This document shows positions 2,458 through 56,054 of a stretch of 64,000 nt of DNA, in pieces (position 1 is the first letter of the stretch; each line of letters opens with the position of its first letter). The translations under genes were made by a program, and so were the position numbers. Where the stretch lies: IMG/VR virus record IMGVR_UViG_3300027710_000011, positions 124,001 to 188,000 of that record; one strand, 5' to 3'. The notes below the pieces were generated by a model, which was not told the origin of the DNA, ran no database searches, and saw nothing but the letters and a program-made list of their open reading frames with translations.

Positions 2458-4805
<2,348 letters not shown>

Positions 4806-7568: not shown

Positions 7569-8713
7569 TCAGCCTGTACAGCTGGTTCGGGATGTTCTTT
7601 AGCGAACTCACGAATCGCACCGAGGAGATCATCTTTGTTCAAAGGAAGATGCGTATCCGCAGTCCACTCGCGTTCTTCACTGACATCGCCTTCAAAGCTA
7701 CGAACCTGATAGGTCAGCTTTCCAAACCAACCAATACCTGCGATTGGTCCATCCGGGAAATCAATACCGGCCATTTTTGATGGCAGGAATGTTCCGTAGT
7801 TCGCACCGAAGCTTTTGGGGTTCAGCAACGAAACAGACTTGGACGGAGGAAGCCAAACGTTTTCAACGTCAGCAATCGCACGTTCACGAGGCCGGCGCCA
7901 AACGGTGTACTTCTGTTCACCGCGATCGAGATGATGGTCATAACCGTAAACGACGTTCTCTTCCCAATAGTAACCTACCGGGACAACAGATTCGCCATCA
8001 ACATCCAACTTGATCTTGTATTCCCATCCGGGACACAATTGAGCACTGTGCAACTCGTTGAAGAACTTGAAGTTACTCACCAAGTCACGTGCCAGCTCCA
8101 GTGCGAAGCCGAACTTGTGCGAATCACGAATCTGAGGTTGCTTGTGAATGTGAGTGAACACGGCGCGCCATGTTTGCACTTCACGATCATTACCAACCTG
8201 GAACAAACCGTCGCTGTTCGGAGTGGAGTTAACTTTCCAATCCAAACCCAGAGGCGGTGTCATTGCGACAGCGTGACCATCATTCTTGTTGATGCGATAG
8301 GTTTGTGCGAACACAAAACCACCTGCGCGACAAGCTTCCAAATCTTCAATTTCGTTTTGCGAAACGATATCAAACGAAATGTCTGGAGTCTTGTACGCAT
8401 TACCGTTGATGTTACCCTTACGAAGAGCGTGCATTTGTTTCTTGCTGAGTGTGTAATACACGTCGCAAGCCACCATGTCTTCGCTGTAAGCGTACATCTT
8501 CAGAATACAAGCGTCCTTGTAGTCCGGGATGATTGCCAACAAACTCTGAGGGTTCTTGGCAATGAAGGTAACGATACCTTCACCTTCCGGATGCAAAGCA
8601 CAGCGATCCGCAGCTTGCTTTGCAAAAGGATAAACCTTGGATGTTTGGACATAATGCGTCTTCGAATACTTATTCAGCAATTCGAAGACGCTGTCCTTGA
8701 GTTCGATGCTCAT
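7565..8713 (-). CDS. hypothetical protein
   Basis: 382-aa ORF, TGATG-coupled to the upstream gene. Confidence 0.8.
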   Translation of the reverse strand: MSIELKDSVFELLNKYSKTHYVQTSKVYPFAKQAADRCALHPEGEGIVTFIAKNPQSLLAIIPDYKDACILKMYAYSEDMVACDVYYTLSKKQMHALRKGNINGNAYKTPDISFDIVSQNEIEDLEACRAGGFVFAQTYRINKNDGHAVAMTPPLGLDWKVNSTPNSDGLFQVGNDREVQTWRAVFTHIHKQPQIRDSHKFGFALELARDLVSNFKFFNELHSAQLCPGWEYKIKLDVDGESVVPVGYYWEENVVYGYDHHLDRGEQKYTVWRRPRERAIADVENVWLPPSKSVSLLNPKSFGANYGTFLPSKMAGIDFPDGPIAGIGWFGKLTYQVRSFEGDVSEEREWTADTHLPLNKDDLLGAIREFAKEHPEPAVQAE

Positions 8714-11287: not shown

Positions 11288-11390
11288 GAGATCAAAAAAA
11301 GATAAAAGGACTACATTGATTCCAGCTCTTCGCTTCGCTCAATGATCAACTATAAAAAGCGTGATTAGTGTAAAAAAAGATTAGCGCATA

Positions 11391-47030: not shown

Positions 47031-47054
47031 AATTAAACAAAAAAAGAAGTAGCA

Positions 47055-48462: not shown

Positions 48463-48897
48463 TCATTCCTCTTGTTTGCCAGGGTTCAACTTTGAACTGT
48501 ACGCTTTGACGCGCAACAGCTGTTCACTTGCTGACTTGATGCGGCATCCGCTCACACCAAGCTTTGTGGCCGTTTCAATCCACGTCTCGATTACCTTTGG
48601 GGCGGCTGGGTCTGTGGATCGCAGCAAGAAAACAGGTTCATCTTTCGGAATGTAAGGTGGTGTTCCTTCTGGTGGAAAGAATGCCAACATCTCTTGCATC
48701 CGATTTCGAATCTCTTCAAAATTAGATTGCTTAAACAAGATATCGACATTTAATAGGCGGAGAGCGTCGGCTGCAAATCTTCCCATTGCAGTATCTTCGC
48801 GGCCGTCATGGGTGGCTGACAATATTAGCCGAACAAGCATGTACTCGTACGGTGTTATGTCCTGGAAACATTCATACTTGTCGCTACCGTAGATCAT
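48463..48897 (-). CDS. hypothetical protein
   Basis: 144 aa; GAGGA SD; C-terminal DEPVFLLR..D..AP..I..W motif. Confidence 0.7.
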   Translation of the reverse strand: MIYGSDKYECFQDITPYEYMLVRLILSATHDGREDTAMGRFAADALRLLNVDILFKQSNFEEIRNRMQEMLAFFPPEGTPPYIPKDEPVFLLRSTDPAAPKVIETWIETATKLGVSGCRIKSASEQLLRVKAYSSKLNPGKQEE

Positions 48898-48948
48898 AGA
48901 CCATCCTCTTTAAGGATTCCCAACTCCGGCCCCCGACCCGGTTCATTT

Positions 48949-49266
48949 TTATTCCACCCTGGGTAAAGAGTCAACGATCTGCTGTTCTTTTTTCTGAGAC
49001 GTTGCGGCCAGCTTCAACATTTGGATTACTCTGTGTGTTGGCTGGTCAATAAATTCAGTAAAAGATAAGCCGAAGTGATCAAATATTCGTTTGGACTTGT
49101 ATTCTTTCATTCGCTCATGCACCGCACCGTCTGTGAATACGTCCTCGCATTCATTCATCAGGATGGGACCGTACGGATGTGCGTCCGTGGGGTCGTCGTG
49201 ATTACGAATGCCAAAGGTCTGTTCGTATCGATCTAACAAGAACAAACGAACAGACGTGGACGGCAT
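48949..49266 (-). CDS. small conserved protein (gp78-like), possibly the -1 frameshift extension of the upstream gene
   Basis: F..FGLSFTEFIDQP motif; frame is open upstream past 49410; no SD at the ATG. Confidence 0.6.
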   Translation of the reverse strand: MPSTSVRLFLLDRYEQTFGIRNHDDPTDAHPYGPILMNECEDVFTDGAVHERMKEYKSKRIFDHFGLSFTEFIDQPTHRVIQMLKLAATSQKKEQQIVDSLPRVE

Positions 49267-49355
49267 TTGAGGAGCTGACGCGATAAGGTCGTTTAATTCC
49301 CTATACGCATCAACTCCTTCCTCAAACTTCGGATCACAGACGTGAATGCTACCTG

Positions 49356-50960
49356 CTATTCGTCGGTCGGGACGATCCGACTGACTCGATGCATGAGCAG
49401 GGAAAAAAACACACCAATCACGTCGATGGGGATCAGATGCGGGAAACGTGGCAGATTGGTTTCTTTGCCAGAGGTTTCAGGAATCGCAATCACCGCCGCC
49501 GTCGAATCGTTGATGAACGAGTCAATTGCTGGGTAATACTTTTCCTGGATTTCCTTGACGCCGCTCAAGACTTCCAGCATGCTGTCGATGGTTTCAACAT
49601 CGTTATAGCTGTTGCCGTCGATCGTGATGTTGGCAATCCAATGACCGTACTGGCGCATACGCGACAGATTGGCGTGATCCAAGATGGAGCGATTGCGGCC
49701 TTCCACATCGGTGCGATCACCAGTGAAGGTACGGTCGATCACGCTGATCAGCGAGTCAATCCACACTTGGGTCGAACGAACGTAGTCGCCAATGCTCGGA
49801 ACCTTGAGACCGATCGTGACTTGATCATCCTTGAGTTGGATGGTGCGGCCGGACGAATGGATGAACTGTTCACGGTAGATTTTGACCATGTCATCCGTGA
49901 TTTGTTCCGGCTGACGATTGCTCATGTGAGCCTTTTGGCGATCAGTGAAGGCTGTTTGATCAACCCACATCAGCTTGCCCACATCGATCAAACCGGTGAT
50001 CACGTTCTTGCTAACGATGCCTTCAGCAGTCACACTGGAGCGGGCGAACTGGAAGCCGTTAGGCCAGATGGTGCAAGCCAGACCCCAGACCAGGATTGGC
50101 AAGTCAAGAATGCTGATCTTGTCGCGCAGATTCTTGCTGTCCTTCAGAGTGGTCGAGTAGACGTGATCCATGATCATGTCCACAATGTTGTCCACCAAGT
50201 AGCCCGAGGTATTGGAGAAGGCCATACCGAATGTAACGCGGCCCAGAGCAATACGAGCTTGCTCGTTGCGCTCACGCAGTTCCAGGTACGCAGAGTCTTT
50301 CGGAGTCTTCAGCGTGATGTGGAAGCCAGAATGCCACAGAGGGATCTGAACCAAACCACCACTGCCCAGCAAAGCGCGCATGCGAATCAGCGCGTTCTCG
50401 CCGGTGAGCTTTTGACCTTCTTTGTCGGCAAACTTCGGCGACGAGAAAGCAAGACGACCATTCGGAGTGTCCAGGCCTTGACGCCAAGCCGAACCTTCAC
50501 GAGTGATTGCAGGAACCAGCAGACCACGTTTCAAGCGAGGGATCTCGCCTTGATCAAGAATGCCTGCCCAGGTCTTGCCAATATTGGTGGCGAAGTCCTT
50601 GGCATCAGGGTGACGCAGGTTTGCTTCCGTATTGGCAGCAGTGGCCGCAGGCAAAGCCATTGTTTCAAGACTGGTGTCCAGAGTACCGTCGAGGTGACGA
50701 ATACCCTTCTTGACATCCTCGTAGTCTTGTTGAACAGTGCTGCAGTCGACGAACCCGAGCATCTCCGGAGTTGCCGATGCGCGGGCATCAGGTTCTTCAG
50801 CATCAAGCTTGGGTGGAACAACAGAAGCCGGAGCTTCTTCATGAGTCTTCACTTCCTCGACTGGCTGTGCAACTTCAACAGCCACGGGCTCGGCAAGAGC
50901 TGGGGGTTCTGCAGGCATTTCCGGCGGAAGGCCGGCGGCTTCATTGGTATCTGTAATCAT
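49356..50960 (-). CDS. conserved jumbo-phage protein (gp77-like; tail/baseplate assembly chaperone candidate)
   Basis: QIPLWHSGF.ITLK.P, WGLA...WP.G, LRQY.HWI-like motif, ends IPID....FF. Confidence 0.65.
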   Translation of the reverse strand: MITDTNEAAGLPPEMPAEPPALAEPVAVEVAQPVEEVKTHEEAPASVVPPKLDAEEPDARASATPEMLGFVDCSTVQQDYEDVKKGIRHLDGTLDTSLETMALPAATAANTEANLRHPDAKDFATNIGKTWAGILDQGEIPRLKRGLLVPAITREGSAWRQGLDTPNGRLAFSSPKFADKEGQKLTGENALIRMRALLGSGGLVQIPLWHSGFHITLKTPKDSAYLELRERNEQARIALGRVTFGMAFSNTSGYLVDNIVDMIMDHVYSTTLKDSKNLRDKISILDLPILVWGLACTIWPNGFQFARSSVTAEGIVSKNVITGLIDVGKLMWVDQTAFTDRQKAHMSNRQPEQITDDMVKIYREQFIHSSGRTIQLKDDQVTIGLKVPSIGDYVRSTQVWIDSLISVIDRTFTGDRTDVEGRNRSILDHANLSRMRQYGHWIANITIDGNSYNDVETIDSMLEVLSGVKEIQEKYYPAIDSFINDSTAAVIAIPETSGKETNLPRFPHLIPIDVIGVFFSLLMHRVSRIVPTDE

Positions 50961-50975
50961 CTTGTTCTTTCTGGA

Positions 50976-51677
50976 TCAGTGAACAGTTTCTTTGACTTCC
51001 ACATCAGTGATGACGGTCGGATCTTGTTCCGGAGTCATACCGGGTTCCTCGGCCACCACGTTCATGTGCAAGTGAGTAGCAATGTGCTCAGTCACTTGCT
51101 TGGAGAGTTCAGTGGCGACTTCCGGGGCGGCAGCGGCCAACTTTGCTTCAGCAGCAACGATGATTTCCGTCACCGACTCGATCATGGGACGCACGTTGGC
51201 TTCGAACTGTTCAGTCCAAACCAAGTAGTCATTGTGCAGCATGATCGCTTTGAGGTGCTCGTCGGCATTGCTCGAAGCACCAGTGTTCTCGGCATGCTGC
51301 GCGCGGATGCCGGAATAGAACTTGGCAAATTCGGTCAAGTCGCGAGCCAGCACGCTGGCCGTGCGGTTGAGATGTTCCATGTTGTCAACATGCTTCATCA
51401 ACTCAGCGTTGCGAAGAATCGGCAACAGGGCGCCAGGAGATGCCAGCAGCTGACCACAGCGGCCGGCGATTTGATTCAGGTCATCCCAAACCTTATTGTT
51501 CTCGGGCGGCTGAATCAAGTTGTCGGCAACAGTCGTGCCTTTCTTGGTCAAACCAGTGGCGCGGCGCTGAGCGCGATTCATTCCGCCAGCCAGCATGTTT
51601 GCGGCCAAGGCCGTCTTTTTCGGATCAGTGGTCGGAACTTCAATGCCGTGGACTTTTCGAGTGTTAGTTTTGCTCAT
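50976..51677 (-). CDS. hypothetical protein
   Basis: 233 aa; AGGAG SD; basic N-terminus with NRAQRR. Confidence 0.8.
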   Translation of the reverse strand: MSKTNTRKVHGIEVPTTDPKKTALAANMLAGGMNRAQRRATGLTKKGTTVADNLIQPPENNKVWDDLNQIAGRCGQLLASPGALLPILRNAELMKHVDNMEHLNRTASVLARDLTEFAKFYSGIRAQHAENTGASSNADEHLKAIMLHNDYLVWTEQFEANVRPMIESVTEIIVAAEAKLAAAAPEVATELSKQVTEHIATHLHMNVVAEEPGMTPEQDPTVITDVEVKETVH

Positions 51678-51884
51678 GATTTTCTCCTGAGGGATATCAA
51701 CTTAAGAATGGCGGATAGCCCTCAACTTACGAATCAGTCCAGGGCCTGATCGTATAAATTGTTAAAAGCACTCATTAAGAACGAGATGCGGCTTCGCTAC
51801 AGAATTCAAAGAAACGTGTATTTTTTCCCTTATTATTCCGCAATATTTTGATTCATTCTCTATATATGAAAAAAGGGTGTCCCC

Positions 51885-56033: not shown

Positions 56034-56054
56034 ACAAAAAAAATAAGGCGTAAT

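Follow-up and report, generated by a model that had tools for sequence, protein, structure and literature searches.

A conserved candidate -1 frameshift site in a giant-phage gene resembling the T4 baseplate-hub assembly chaperones

A run of seven T's near the end of a 534-codon phage gene probably makes some ribosomes slip back by one base and add a further domain to the protein (our estimate of the probability is roughly 0.75). The same unannotated arrangement is found in all 90 phiKZ-like giant-phage loci examined, in a protein that resembles the baseplate-hub assembly chaperones of T4. The sequence anatomy and its conservation are evident, whereas the occurrence of the shift, its ribosomal nature, its efficiency and the function are inferred in the absence of protein, Ribo-seq or reporter evidence. 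According to this reading, most ribosomes translating the gp77-like mRNA terminate at the zero-frame stop, whereas a minority slip back one base on the U-run (UUU UUU at Phe518-Phe519) and continue in the -1 frame through the zero-frame stop. The predicted products are 534 aa and about 670 aa. In the longer one, the last 15 residues, the end of a C-terminal helix, are replaced by a flexible linker and a conserved helical domain. The downstream 105-aa ORF would not be a separate gene but the tail of the transframe product. The site was found in the window, i.e. the whole 64,000-nucleotide stretch that was analysed (positions 124,001 to 188,000 of IMG/VR virus record IMGVR_UViG_3300027710_000011), and the coordinates of its parts are listed in the table. 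A search for near-identical DNA in phage genomes gave no match, so the window phage is new at the DNA level.

Features of the proposed recoding unit and its upstream neighbour, in coordinates of the window
Coordinates	Strand	Feature	Size and details
50976..51677	-	Upstream gp78-like gene; context only, not part of the recoding unit	233 aa
49356..50960	-	Zero-frame gene; homolog of phiKZ gp77 / PhiPA3 gp074 (phrog_4585) and distant relative of the T4 gp26/gp51 hub assembly proteins	534 aa; stop TAG 49358-49356
49403..49410	-	Proposed shift site G_UUU_UUU_U	T7 run 49409..49403 (A7 on the + strand), covering Phe518 and Phe519
48949..49407	-	-1-frame extension (phrog_12109)	152 codons from the run plus TAA (48951-48949); disordered linker of about 20 residues followed by a conserved helical domain of about 130 residues
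49356..49402	-	Dual-coding overlap	Zero frame: C-terminal helix tail, SLLMHRVSRIVPTDE followed by the stop; -1 frame: start of the linker, PAHASSQSDRPDRR
48949..49266	-	ORF as a gene caller would call it, from ATG 49266; truncated reading of the extension domain	105 aa

The preliminary description, which had proposed a -1 frameshift of the tail-chaperone type joining two adjacent genes, is confirmed with respect to the sequence. The zero-frame protein ends in IDVIGVFFSLLMHRVSRIVPTDE, and the gene reads GTG TTT TTT TCC at the run. The -1 frame, which reads WCVFFPAHASSQSDRPDRRIAGSIHVCDPKFEEGVDAYRELNDLIASAPQMPSTS, is open from about 20 codons upstream of the run to the TAA. No ATG, GTG or TTG is found in that frame before ATG 49266, and the bases preceding that ATG (TCAGCTCCTCAA) hold no SD. 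A fusion of residues 1-519 with 151 -1-frame codons gives 670 aa, as had been proposed. T7 runs are rare in the window, with 6 observed against 17.7 expected from shuffled sequences. However, the label 'gp78-like', which had been given to the downstream ORF, is wrong: the gene order in PhiPA3 and phiKZ is gp78-like, gp77-like and then the extension, and the downstream ORF belongs to the PHIKZ076.4 / PhiPA3 gp073 / 201phi2-1 gp135 family, the annotations of which are truncated. The zero-frame protein was found by tblastn in 191 phage records and matches its PHROG family with E=8e-98. Its AF2 model has a pLDDT of 85 and a pTM of 0.84, with a predicted helix at residues 514-529.

Comparison with relatives supports a recoding site, and none of the sequence-level tests that had been named as able to refute the idea did so. 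In 79 of 79 IMG/VR loci and in 11 of 11 further isolates the downstream ORF is in the -1 frame, open without interruption from the T-run. phiKZ shows the same, and the isolates include PhiPA3-like, RSF1, Xoo-sp14, CR5, a Machinavirus, a Vibrio phage and Bacillus phage AgentSmith. The density of -1-frame stops in the gene body is 0.094 per codon, which gives a naive log10 P of -47.7 for 64 representatives, although this and the other P values treat representatives as independent, which they are not fully. There are 15 different linker lengths (23-45 codons), all of which preserve the frame. Across relatives, -1-frame stops occur as close as 7 nt before the end of the run and zero-frame stops as close as 24 nt after it. 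The downstream ORF has no conserved start of its own: 45 of 64 relatives have no ATG, GTG or TTG between the run and the conserved HV..P.FG anchor, and in phiKZ the first start is 221 nt past the stop, inside the domain.

The homologous position carries T5-T8 in all relatives. The first Phe codon is TTT in 64 of 64 representatives, although elsewhere in the same genes TTT is used 402 times and TTC 647 times, and 55 against 338 times in the GC-rich ones (log10 P = -35). The base preceding this codon is T in 62 of 74 sequences, against 0.283 expected (p = 5e-23). An in-phase U_UUU_UUN heptamer is present in 58 of 74 and is kept even where the protein reads V-F-L (GTT TTT TTA / TTG). By contrast, the window belongs to a minority of 12 of 74 with G_UUU_UUY, which is not the canonical X_XXY_YYZ, and 4 have U_UUU_NNN. 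Four clades have a decayed run (T_TTT_ATC and similar), yet keep the open frame.

Codon choice indicates that the -1 frame is read directly after the run. Of 211 conserved columns, the strongest biases are at F518 TTT (z 10.3), L522 CTC (z 10.2) and T520 ACC (z 5.3), all within the run and overlap. The third bases of T520 ACC and L522 CTC are what give Pro and Arg of the conserved -1-frame motif FF-Y-P-x-R, and the zero-frame tail is also conserved (FFxLLxQ[KR]). In an alignment of 64 relatives, the extension includes a conserved domain, and the AF2 model of the extension has a pLDDT of 86. Both this model and the PHROG profile show that the domain begins upstream of ATG 49266. The profile score rises from 76.5 to 88.5 bits when the 31 codons before this ATG are included, and the ATG is residue 49 of the extension, located after predicted helix 34-44. 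The extension profile finds 1841 clusters in public data, in which gene calls start anywhere between profile positions 1 and 56. No naturally fused single-ORF homolog was found among the best 150 of these hits.

No stimulatory element was found. Folding of the 75 nt following the run in 72 sequences gave a mean z of -0.2 with no shared hairpin; only a sporadic 4-bp CUGC/GCAG hairpin appeared, which follows from the Leu-Leu-x-Gln codons. An SD-like element upstream was present in at most 14% of sequences against a 6% background, which is not convincing. Efficiency may therefore be low, although such elements are not obligatory for low-level phage frameshifts.

The same fusion of about 670 aa could be produced by transcriptional slippage, if the phage or host RNA polymerase adds an extra U in a fraction of transcripts. 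The site is a homopolymer in every relative, no RNA stimulator typical of efficient ribosomal frameshifting was found, and the 12 G_UUU_UUY sites, including that of the window, fit run length better than phase. However, the run is short for slippage (mostly T6-T7) and its phase is conserved, with T_TTT_TTC/A/G variants keeping the heptamer while shortening the run. In addition, RNA-seq contigs of phiKZ-like infections from four studies carry the unedited T7 and are continuous across both ORFs, but contigs hide minor variants, so that only majority editing is excluded. We consider this mechanism unlikely, yet not excluded.

Even less likely is that there is no fusion and the downstream domain is translated on its own, by termination-reinitiation or from a non-canonical start near the gp77 stop (for example, ATA 49359-49357 overlapping TAG, or ATT 49347-49345). 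In RP12/RP31 an ATG does overlap the gp77 stop (TGATG), the structured domain begins close to the zero-frame stop and stop-start coupling is common in phages. Nevertheless, besides the lack of canonical starts in most relatives, the -1 frame is kept open and coding for FF-Y-P-x-R for 8-21 codons upstream of the zero-frame stop, which an independent start near the stop would not require, and the T-run itself would remain unexplained. Finally, the run might merely encode a conserved Phe-Phe (F518 in 64 of 64, F519 in 60 of 64), with the 105-aa ORF being the real gene or the metagenomic assembly of the window carrying an indel. This is very improbable, since the arrangement recurs in 90 independent loci, including finished isolate genomes, codon choice at Phe518 is opposite to the preference of each genome, T4 gp26 encodes the same FFxLL motif as TTC TTT without a run, and the 105-aa ORF cuts a predicted helix.

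The gp77 family appears to be distantly related to T4 gp26 and gp51, which are listed as hub assembly chaperones (PMC3004832). Both T4 proteins hit PF12322 strongly, and 2 of 63 gp77-family members hit it at best E=5e-5, whereas the window protein has no Pfam hit at E<=0.01 and none of ten AT-rich divergent members hit PF12322. A Foldseek search of BFVD recovered a 'Baseplate hub assembly protein, T4-like' (prob 1.0, E 1.7e-4, TMt 0.50). An Atlas structure search, run with the model of the best feature hit rather than of this protein, gave TM 0.72 to a PF12322 cluster. All models are predicted, since no solved structure of gp26 or gp51 turned up, and searches of PDB folds with both of our models gave nothing below E=1. 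The C-terminal layout AhP-x-CPxC...FFxLL is shared with T4 gp26, although hhalign of the family profile against single T4 gp26 and gp51 sequences aligned only the CPxC motif. Some GenBank annotators already write 'T4 gp26 like'. The T4 proteins are 208 and 249 aa and lack the N-terminal part of about 250-300 residues, and T4 gp26 ends at FFELL, with no -1 extension. T4 gene 26 also gives two products, 26 and the nested 26', but the second is made by internal initiation and not by frameshift.

The tail-chaperone logic of the preliminary description is thus plausible but unproven. As in lambda G/GT and P2 E/E+E' (Levin 1993; Xu, Hendrix and Duda 2004; summarised in PMC5009743), the proposed -1 shift is placed a few codons before the stop of the first ORF, the second ORF lacks its own start, two products would share an N-terminal part, presumably at a fixed ratio, and no strong RNA stimulator is present. 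The lambda and P2 products act in morphogenesis and are absent from the virion; gp77 is not mentioned among the 40 virion proteins of the phiKZ atlas, which is only indirect evidence. However, there is no detectable homology: Pfam gives nothing, tail-chaperone hits in BFVD have E>0.3, and a language-model score of 0.87 to P2 GpE is below the threshold of the method and is only a lead. The first ORF is about 500-700 aa rather than about 100-150 aa, the slip motif is a U-run, and the locus is not located between tube and tape-measure genes but next to gp78-like, gp79-like, RNA polymerase subunit, helicase, DNA polymerase and nuclease genes. In E. coli dnaX (A_AAA_AAG), tandem slippage on a homopolymeric heptamer inside a long gene likewise yields two products, but there the shift truncates the protein and is driven by an upstream SD and a downstream hairpin. 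As at transcriptional slippage sites, a homopolymer run would give access to an overlapping frame.

By analogy and distant homology, the short form would act as a baseplate-hub assembly factor like T4 gp26/gp51, and the long form would tether it to a second partner at a fixed low ratio, as in lambda G/GT. More tentatively, all phiKZ-like giant phages (Chimalliviridae and their relatives, including a Bacillus phage) might share an obligatory -1 frameshift that turns a gp26/gp51-type chaperone into a two-form system, the missing counterpart of the 'universal' tail-chaperone frameshift in this lineage of contractile-tail phages. This would also hint that T4 gene 26 solves the same two-product problem by other means. 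Frameshifting of this general kind is known from other phages; what would be new is a family-wide recoding event in a group of model phages (phiKZ, PhiPA3, 201phi2-1, RAY-like, SPN3US-like), which is not annotated in any of the 17 GenBank records inspected and for which nine literature searches found no published description, the literature hits for 'gp77' referring to the numbering of other phages. It would correct the annotation of a gene to which gene callers currently give arbitrary, truncated N-termini; in phiKZ, a 219-nt 'gap' before PHIKZ076.4 would in fact be coding. It would also give a handle on baseplate or hub assembly in nucleus-forming jumbo phages, an essentially unstudied step, tying it to the poorly understood T4 chaperones. 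A natural U-run shifter without an obvious stimulator is a simple test case for low-level frameshifting and for how phage ribosome-modifying factors might affect it. A 786-aa antisense ORF on the + strand was rejected as a real gene, being a shadow ORF seen in the GC-richer relatives.

On the minus strand, the 534-aa ORF ends with ...IDVIGVFFSLLMHRVSRIVPTDE*. Its residues Phe518-Phe519 lie in the context GTG TTT TTT TCC, which forms a T7 run. The frame one base back reads ...WCVFFPAHASSQSDRPDRRIAGSIHVCDPKFEEGVDAYRELNDLIASAPQMPSTS... and stays open from about 20 codons upstream of the run to its TAA. No ATG, GTG or TTG occurs in this frame before the ATG of the 105-aa ORF, and that ATG is not preceded by an SD. 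No promoter-like or terminator-like site separates the two ORFs. Runs of this kind are under-represented in the window, with 6 T7 runs observed versus 17.7 expected. Thus, the preliminary description of the sequence, in which a T-run near the end of the 534-aa gene is followed by an open -1 frame with no start before the ATG of the 105-aa ORF, is accurate.

Coordinates of the features in the window and in the compared loci (L numbers denote individual loci of the comparison)
Sequence	Position	Strand	Feature
Window	50960..49356	-	534-aa gp77-like ORF
Window	49358-49356	-	TAG of the 534-aa ORF
Window	49409..49403	-	T7 run at Phe518-Phe519
Window	49266	-	First ATG in the -1 frame, start of the 105-aa ORF
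Window	48951-48949	-	TAA of the -1 frame
Window	48944-48946	-	ATG 3 nt after the TAA of the extension, opening a 20-codon ORF
Window	48897..48463		Next sizeable gene, 144 aa
Window	11294-11300, 11372-11378, 47039-47045, 56036-56043	-	The only other T7 or longer runs
Window	49389-51749	+	786-aa antisense ORF
L084 (phiKZ NC_004629)	2899-3118		219-nt annotated gap between PHIKZ077 and PHIKZ076.4
L085 (T4 NC_000866)	7803-8429	-	gp26
L022, L026, L027	around 3770-4020		Decayed run
L046/L047	around 3805		Decayed run
L096 (Klebsiella phage FBKp24); L080, L081	2370-2490 (L096)		Long zero-frame tail after the run
L009 / L002 (Ralstonia RP12 / RP31)	3647-3651		ATG overlapping the gp77 stop (TGATG)

The window comes from a 276,772-bp IMG/VR contig with no close DNA relative among sequenced phages. 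The 534-aa protein belongs to phrog_4585 and is the homolog of phiKZ gp77 / PhiPA3 gp074. By contrast, the downstream ORF is not gp78-like, contrary to the preliminary description. In PhiPA3 and phiKZ the gene order is gp78-like, gp77-like and then this ORF, and its relatives are PhiPA3 gp073, 201phi2-1 gp135 and PHIKZ076.4 (phrog_12109). Homology to relatives continues upstream of the ATG of the 105-aa ORF, right up to the gp77 stop, and the PHROG profile score rises from 76.5 to 88.5 bits when the 31 codons in question are added. An AlphaFold model of the -1-frame product (pLDDT 86) shows a disordered linker (residues 1-20) followed by a helical domain, with the ATG corresponding to residue 49, after helix 34-44. 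Thus, the 105-aa ORF is a truncated reading. Downstream of the extension, a closely following ATG opens only a very short ORF, whereas the next sizeable gene has no PHROG or Pfam match.

To examine whether this arrangement is conserved, we collected 80 loci from IMG/VR using a family alignment, together with phiKZ and 13 other annotated isolate loci; eleven of the newly collected isolates were included in the frame test. In 79 of 79 usable IMG/VR loci the ORF following the gp77 homolog is in the -1 frame, and this frame is open all the way back to a T-run located 30-64 nt before the stop. The same holds for 11 further isolates, namely, LucasX, pEa_SNUABM_54, Viktualia, Eowyn, Xoo-sp14, RSF1, Bacillus phage AgentSmith, a Machinavirus, Cronobacter CR5, Vibrio Yong XC31 and Klebsiella FBKp24. 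In the lineage of the latter phage (L096, L080, L081) the zero-frame tail after the run is 118 nt long, much longer than elsewhere, yet the -1 frame stays open through all of it (166 codons). The arrangement is also found in phiKZ itself, where the annotated PHIKZ076.4 begins 221 nt after the gp77 stop, although homology and the open frame begin at the run. The apparent intergenic gap of phiKZ is open in the -1 frame and homologous to PhiPA3 gp073 from locus position 3001. PHIKZ076.4 as annotated (80 aa) is a truncated piece. Statistics were computed on 64 representatives (less than 80% identical over the last 300 residues; mean column identity of 28%). Stops in the -1 frame occur at 0.094 per codon in the gene body, and openness over the roughly 17 overlap codons in all 64 representatives therefore has a naive log10 P of -47.7. 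These probabilities ignore shared ancestry; however, at this divergence synonymous sites and indels are effectively randomised, so the qualitative conclusion stands. The linker between the run and the conserved HV..P.FG anchor takes 15 different lengths (23-45 codons), always in frame. In 45 of 64 representatives there is no canonical start anywhere before the anchor, and most of the rest have only the GTG of the anchor's own Val. Ralstonia RP12 and RP31 represent the only lineage seen in which an ATG overlaps the gp77 stop in the -1 frame; both a fusion and a stand-alone extension protein could be made there.

The first Phe codon of the site is TTT in 64 of 64 representatives. Elsewhere in the same genes Phe is encoded by TTT 402 times and by TTC 647 times, and 55 and 338 times, respectively, in the GC-rich genomes (log10 P = -35). 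The preceding base, a third codon position of ten different codons, is T in 62 of 74 sequences against 0.283 expected (p = 5e-23). The heptamer U_UUU_UUN is present in the zero-frame phase in 58 of 74 sequences, 12 carry G_UUU_UUY, including the window, and 4 carry a decayed U_UUU_NNN. In AgentSmith and pEa_SNUABM_54 the protein reads Val-Phe-Leu, but the heptamer is kept (GTT TTT TTA / TTG). The clades represented by L022, L026, L027 and L046/L047 have a run decayed to T5-T6 (T_TTT_ATC, T_TTT_ACC, T_TTT_TCC, T_TTT_ATT), but still keep the -1 frame open and have no independent start before the domain; the extension may be made there by P-site-only slippage at lower efficiency. T4 gp26, which ends with ...CPECGKTHAHVIRGLKEFFELL*, has the same motif order as the gp77 family, including FFxLL, yet its Phe-Phe is encoded by TTC TTT and there is no extension. 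Across relatives, the last -1-frame stop lies as close as 7 nt before the end of the run and the zero-frame stop as close as 24 nt after it, leaving the run as the only common place to change frame.

Codon choice was scanned over the 211 columns with a conserved amino acid. The three strongest departures from each genome's own usage are F518 TTT (z 10.3), L522 CTC (z 10.2) and T520 ACC (z 5.3), with F519 close behind. The third bases of ACC and CTC are the first bases of the -1-frame codons CCN and CGN. Indeed, the -1 frame reads a conserved FF-Y-P-x-R-[PSA]-E, with Y in 43, P in 41 and R in 32 of 64 representatives, while the zero frame keeps FFxLLxQ[KR]. The -1 frame is therefore under protein-level selection from the first codon after the run, well upstream of the zero-frame stop.

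The core inference of the preliminary description, a 534-aa protein plus a -1 fusion of about 670 aa, is thus strongly supported by comparative sequence evidence, though not yet by protein data. Selection on the -1 frame directly after the run is predicted by a frameshift, but not by an independent start near the stop. The conserved phase of the heptamer points to tandem tRNA-Phe slippage by the ribosome. In the case of the window (G_UUU_UUU_U), the P-site re-pairing would have a first-position mismatch, or the slip would involve only the P-site tRNA on the second UUU; either way, the product is residues 1-519 followed by FPAHASS..., 670 aa in all. We found neither a conserved downstream structure nor an SD-like element upstream, and a low efficiency is therefore expected, as with lambda G/GT. 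The main alternative is transcriptional slippage. Assembled RNA-seq contigs of phiKZ-like infections from four studies carry the unedited T7, which excludes majority editing only. In the AlphaFold model of the 534-aa protein (pLDDT 85, pTM 0.84), Phe518-519 open the last predicted helix, 514-529, and the long form thus swaps the end of that helix for the linker and the extra domain.

Neither model has a match among solved structures. Nevertheless, several lines of evidence link the gp77 family to T4 gp26/gp51. Against predicted viral structures, the gp77-like model hits a 'Baseplate protein' (E 1e-30) and a 'Baseplate hub assembly protein, bacteriophage T4-like' (E 1.7e-4, prob 1.0). The ESM Atlas links the family to PF12322 clusters with a feature score of 0.90, and its structure search, run with the model of the best feature hit rather than of this protein, gave TM 0.72. 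In addition, 2 of 63 members hit PF12322 at E = 5e-5. T4 gp26 and gp51 are both PF12322, and a T4 review lists both as hub assembly chaperones (PMC3004832); the T4 record also carries a nested CDS, 26', sharing the stop of gp26. The C-terminal AhP-x-CPxC...FFxLL layout is shared with gp26. Three GenBank records already name the protein 'putative baseplate hub assembly protein', one with the note 'T4 gp26 like'. The phiKZ cryo-EM atlas of 40 virion proteins does not mention gp77, which fits a non-structural assembly factor. By contrast, the extension domain has no informative relative; a language-model score of 0.87 to P2 GpE is below the reliability line of the method. Thus, the chaperone reading is plausible through distant similarity to T4 gp26/gp51, and the analogy with G/GT put forward in the preliminary description is reasonable as a working model, but is not shown.

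Frameshifting of this kind is well known, whereas this instance, its gene family and its breadth appear to be new. None of the 17 GenBank records inspected annotates a joined CDS, and no description was found in the literature searched, which included a large recoding review, a frameshift-prediction paper and the phiKZ and Goslar structure papers. Annotated starts of the small ORF are scattered, from overlapping the gp77 stop to 219 nt after it. In a search of 1.84 billion representative proteins, the extension profile finds 1,841 clusters, of which the best 150 are all 104-186 aa, with N-termini falling anywhere between profile positions 1 and 56. Such scatter is the signature of gene callers guessing a start. 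On the opposite strand, the 786-aa ORF runs antisense across the gp77-like and gp78-like genes. The same antisense frame is fully open in at least 12 of 64 relatives, mostly the GC-richer ones, and it looks like a compositional shadow ORF.
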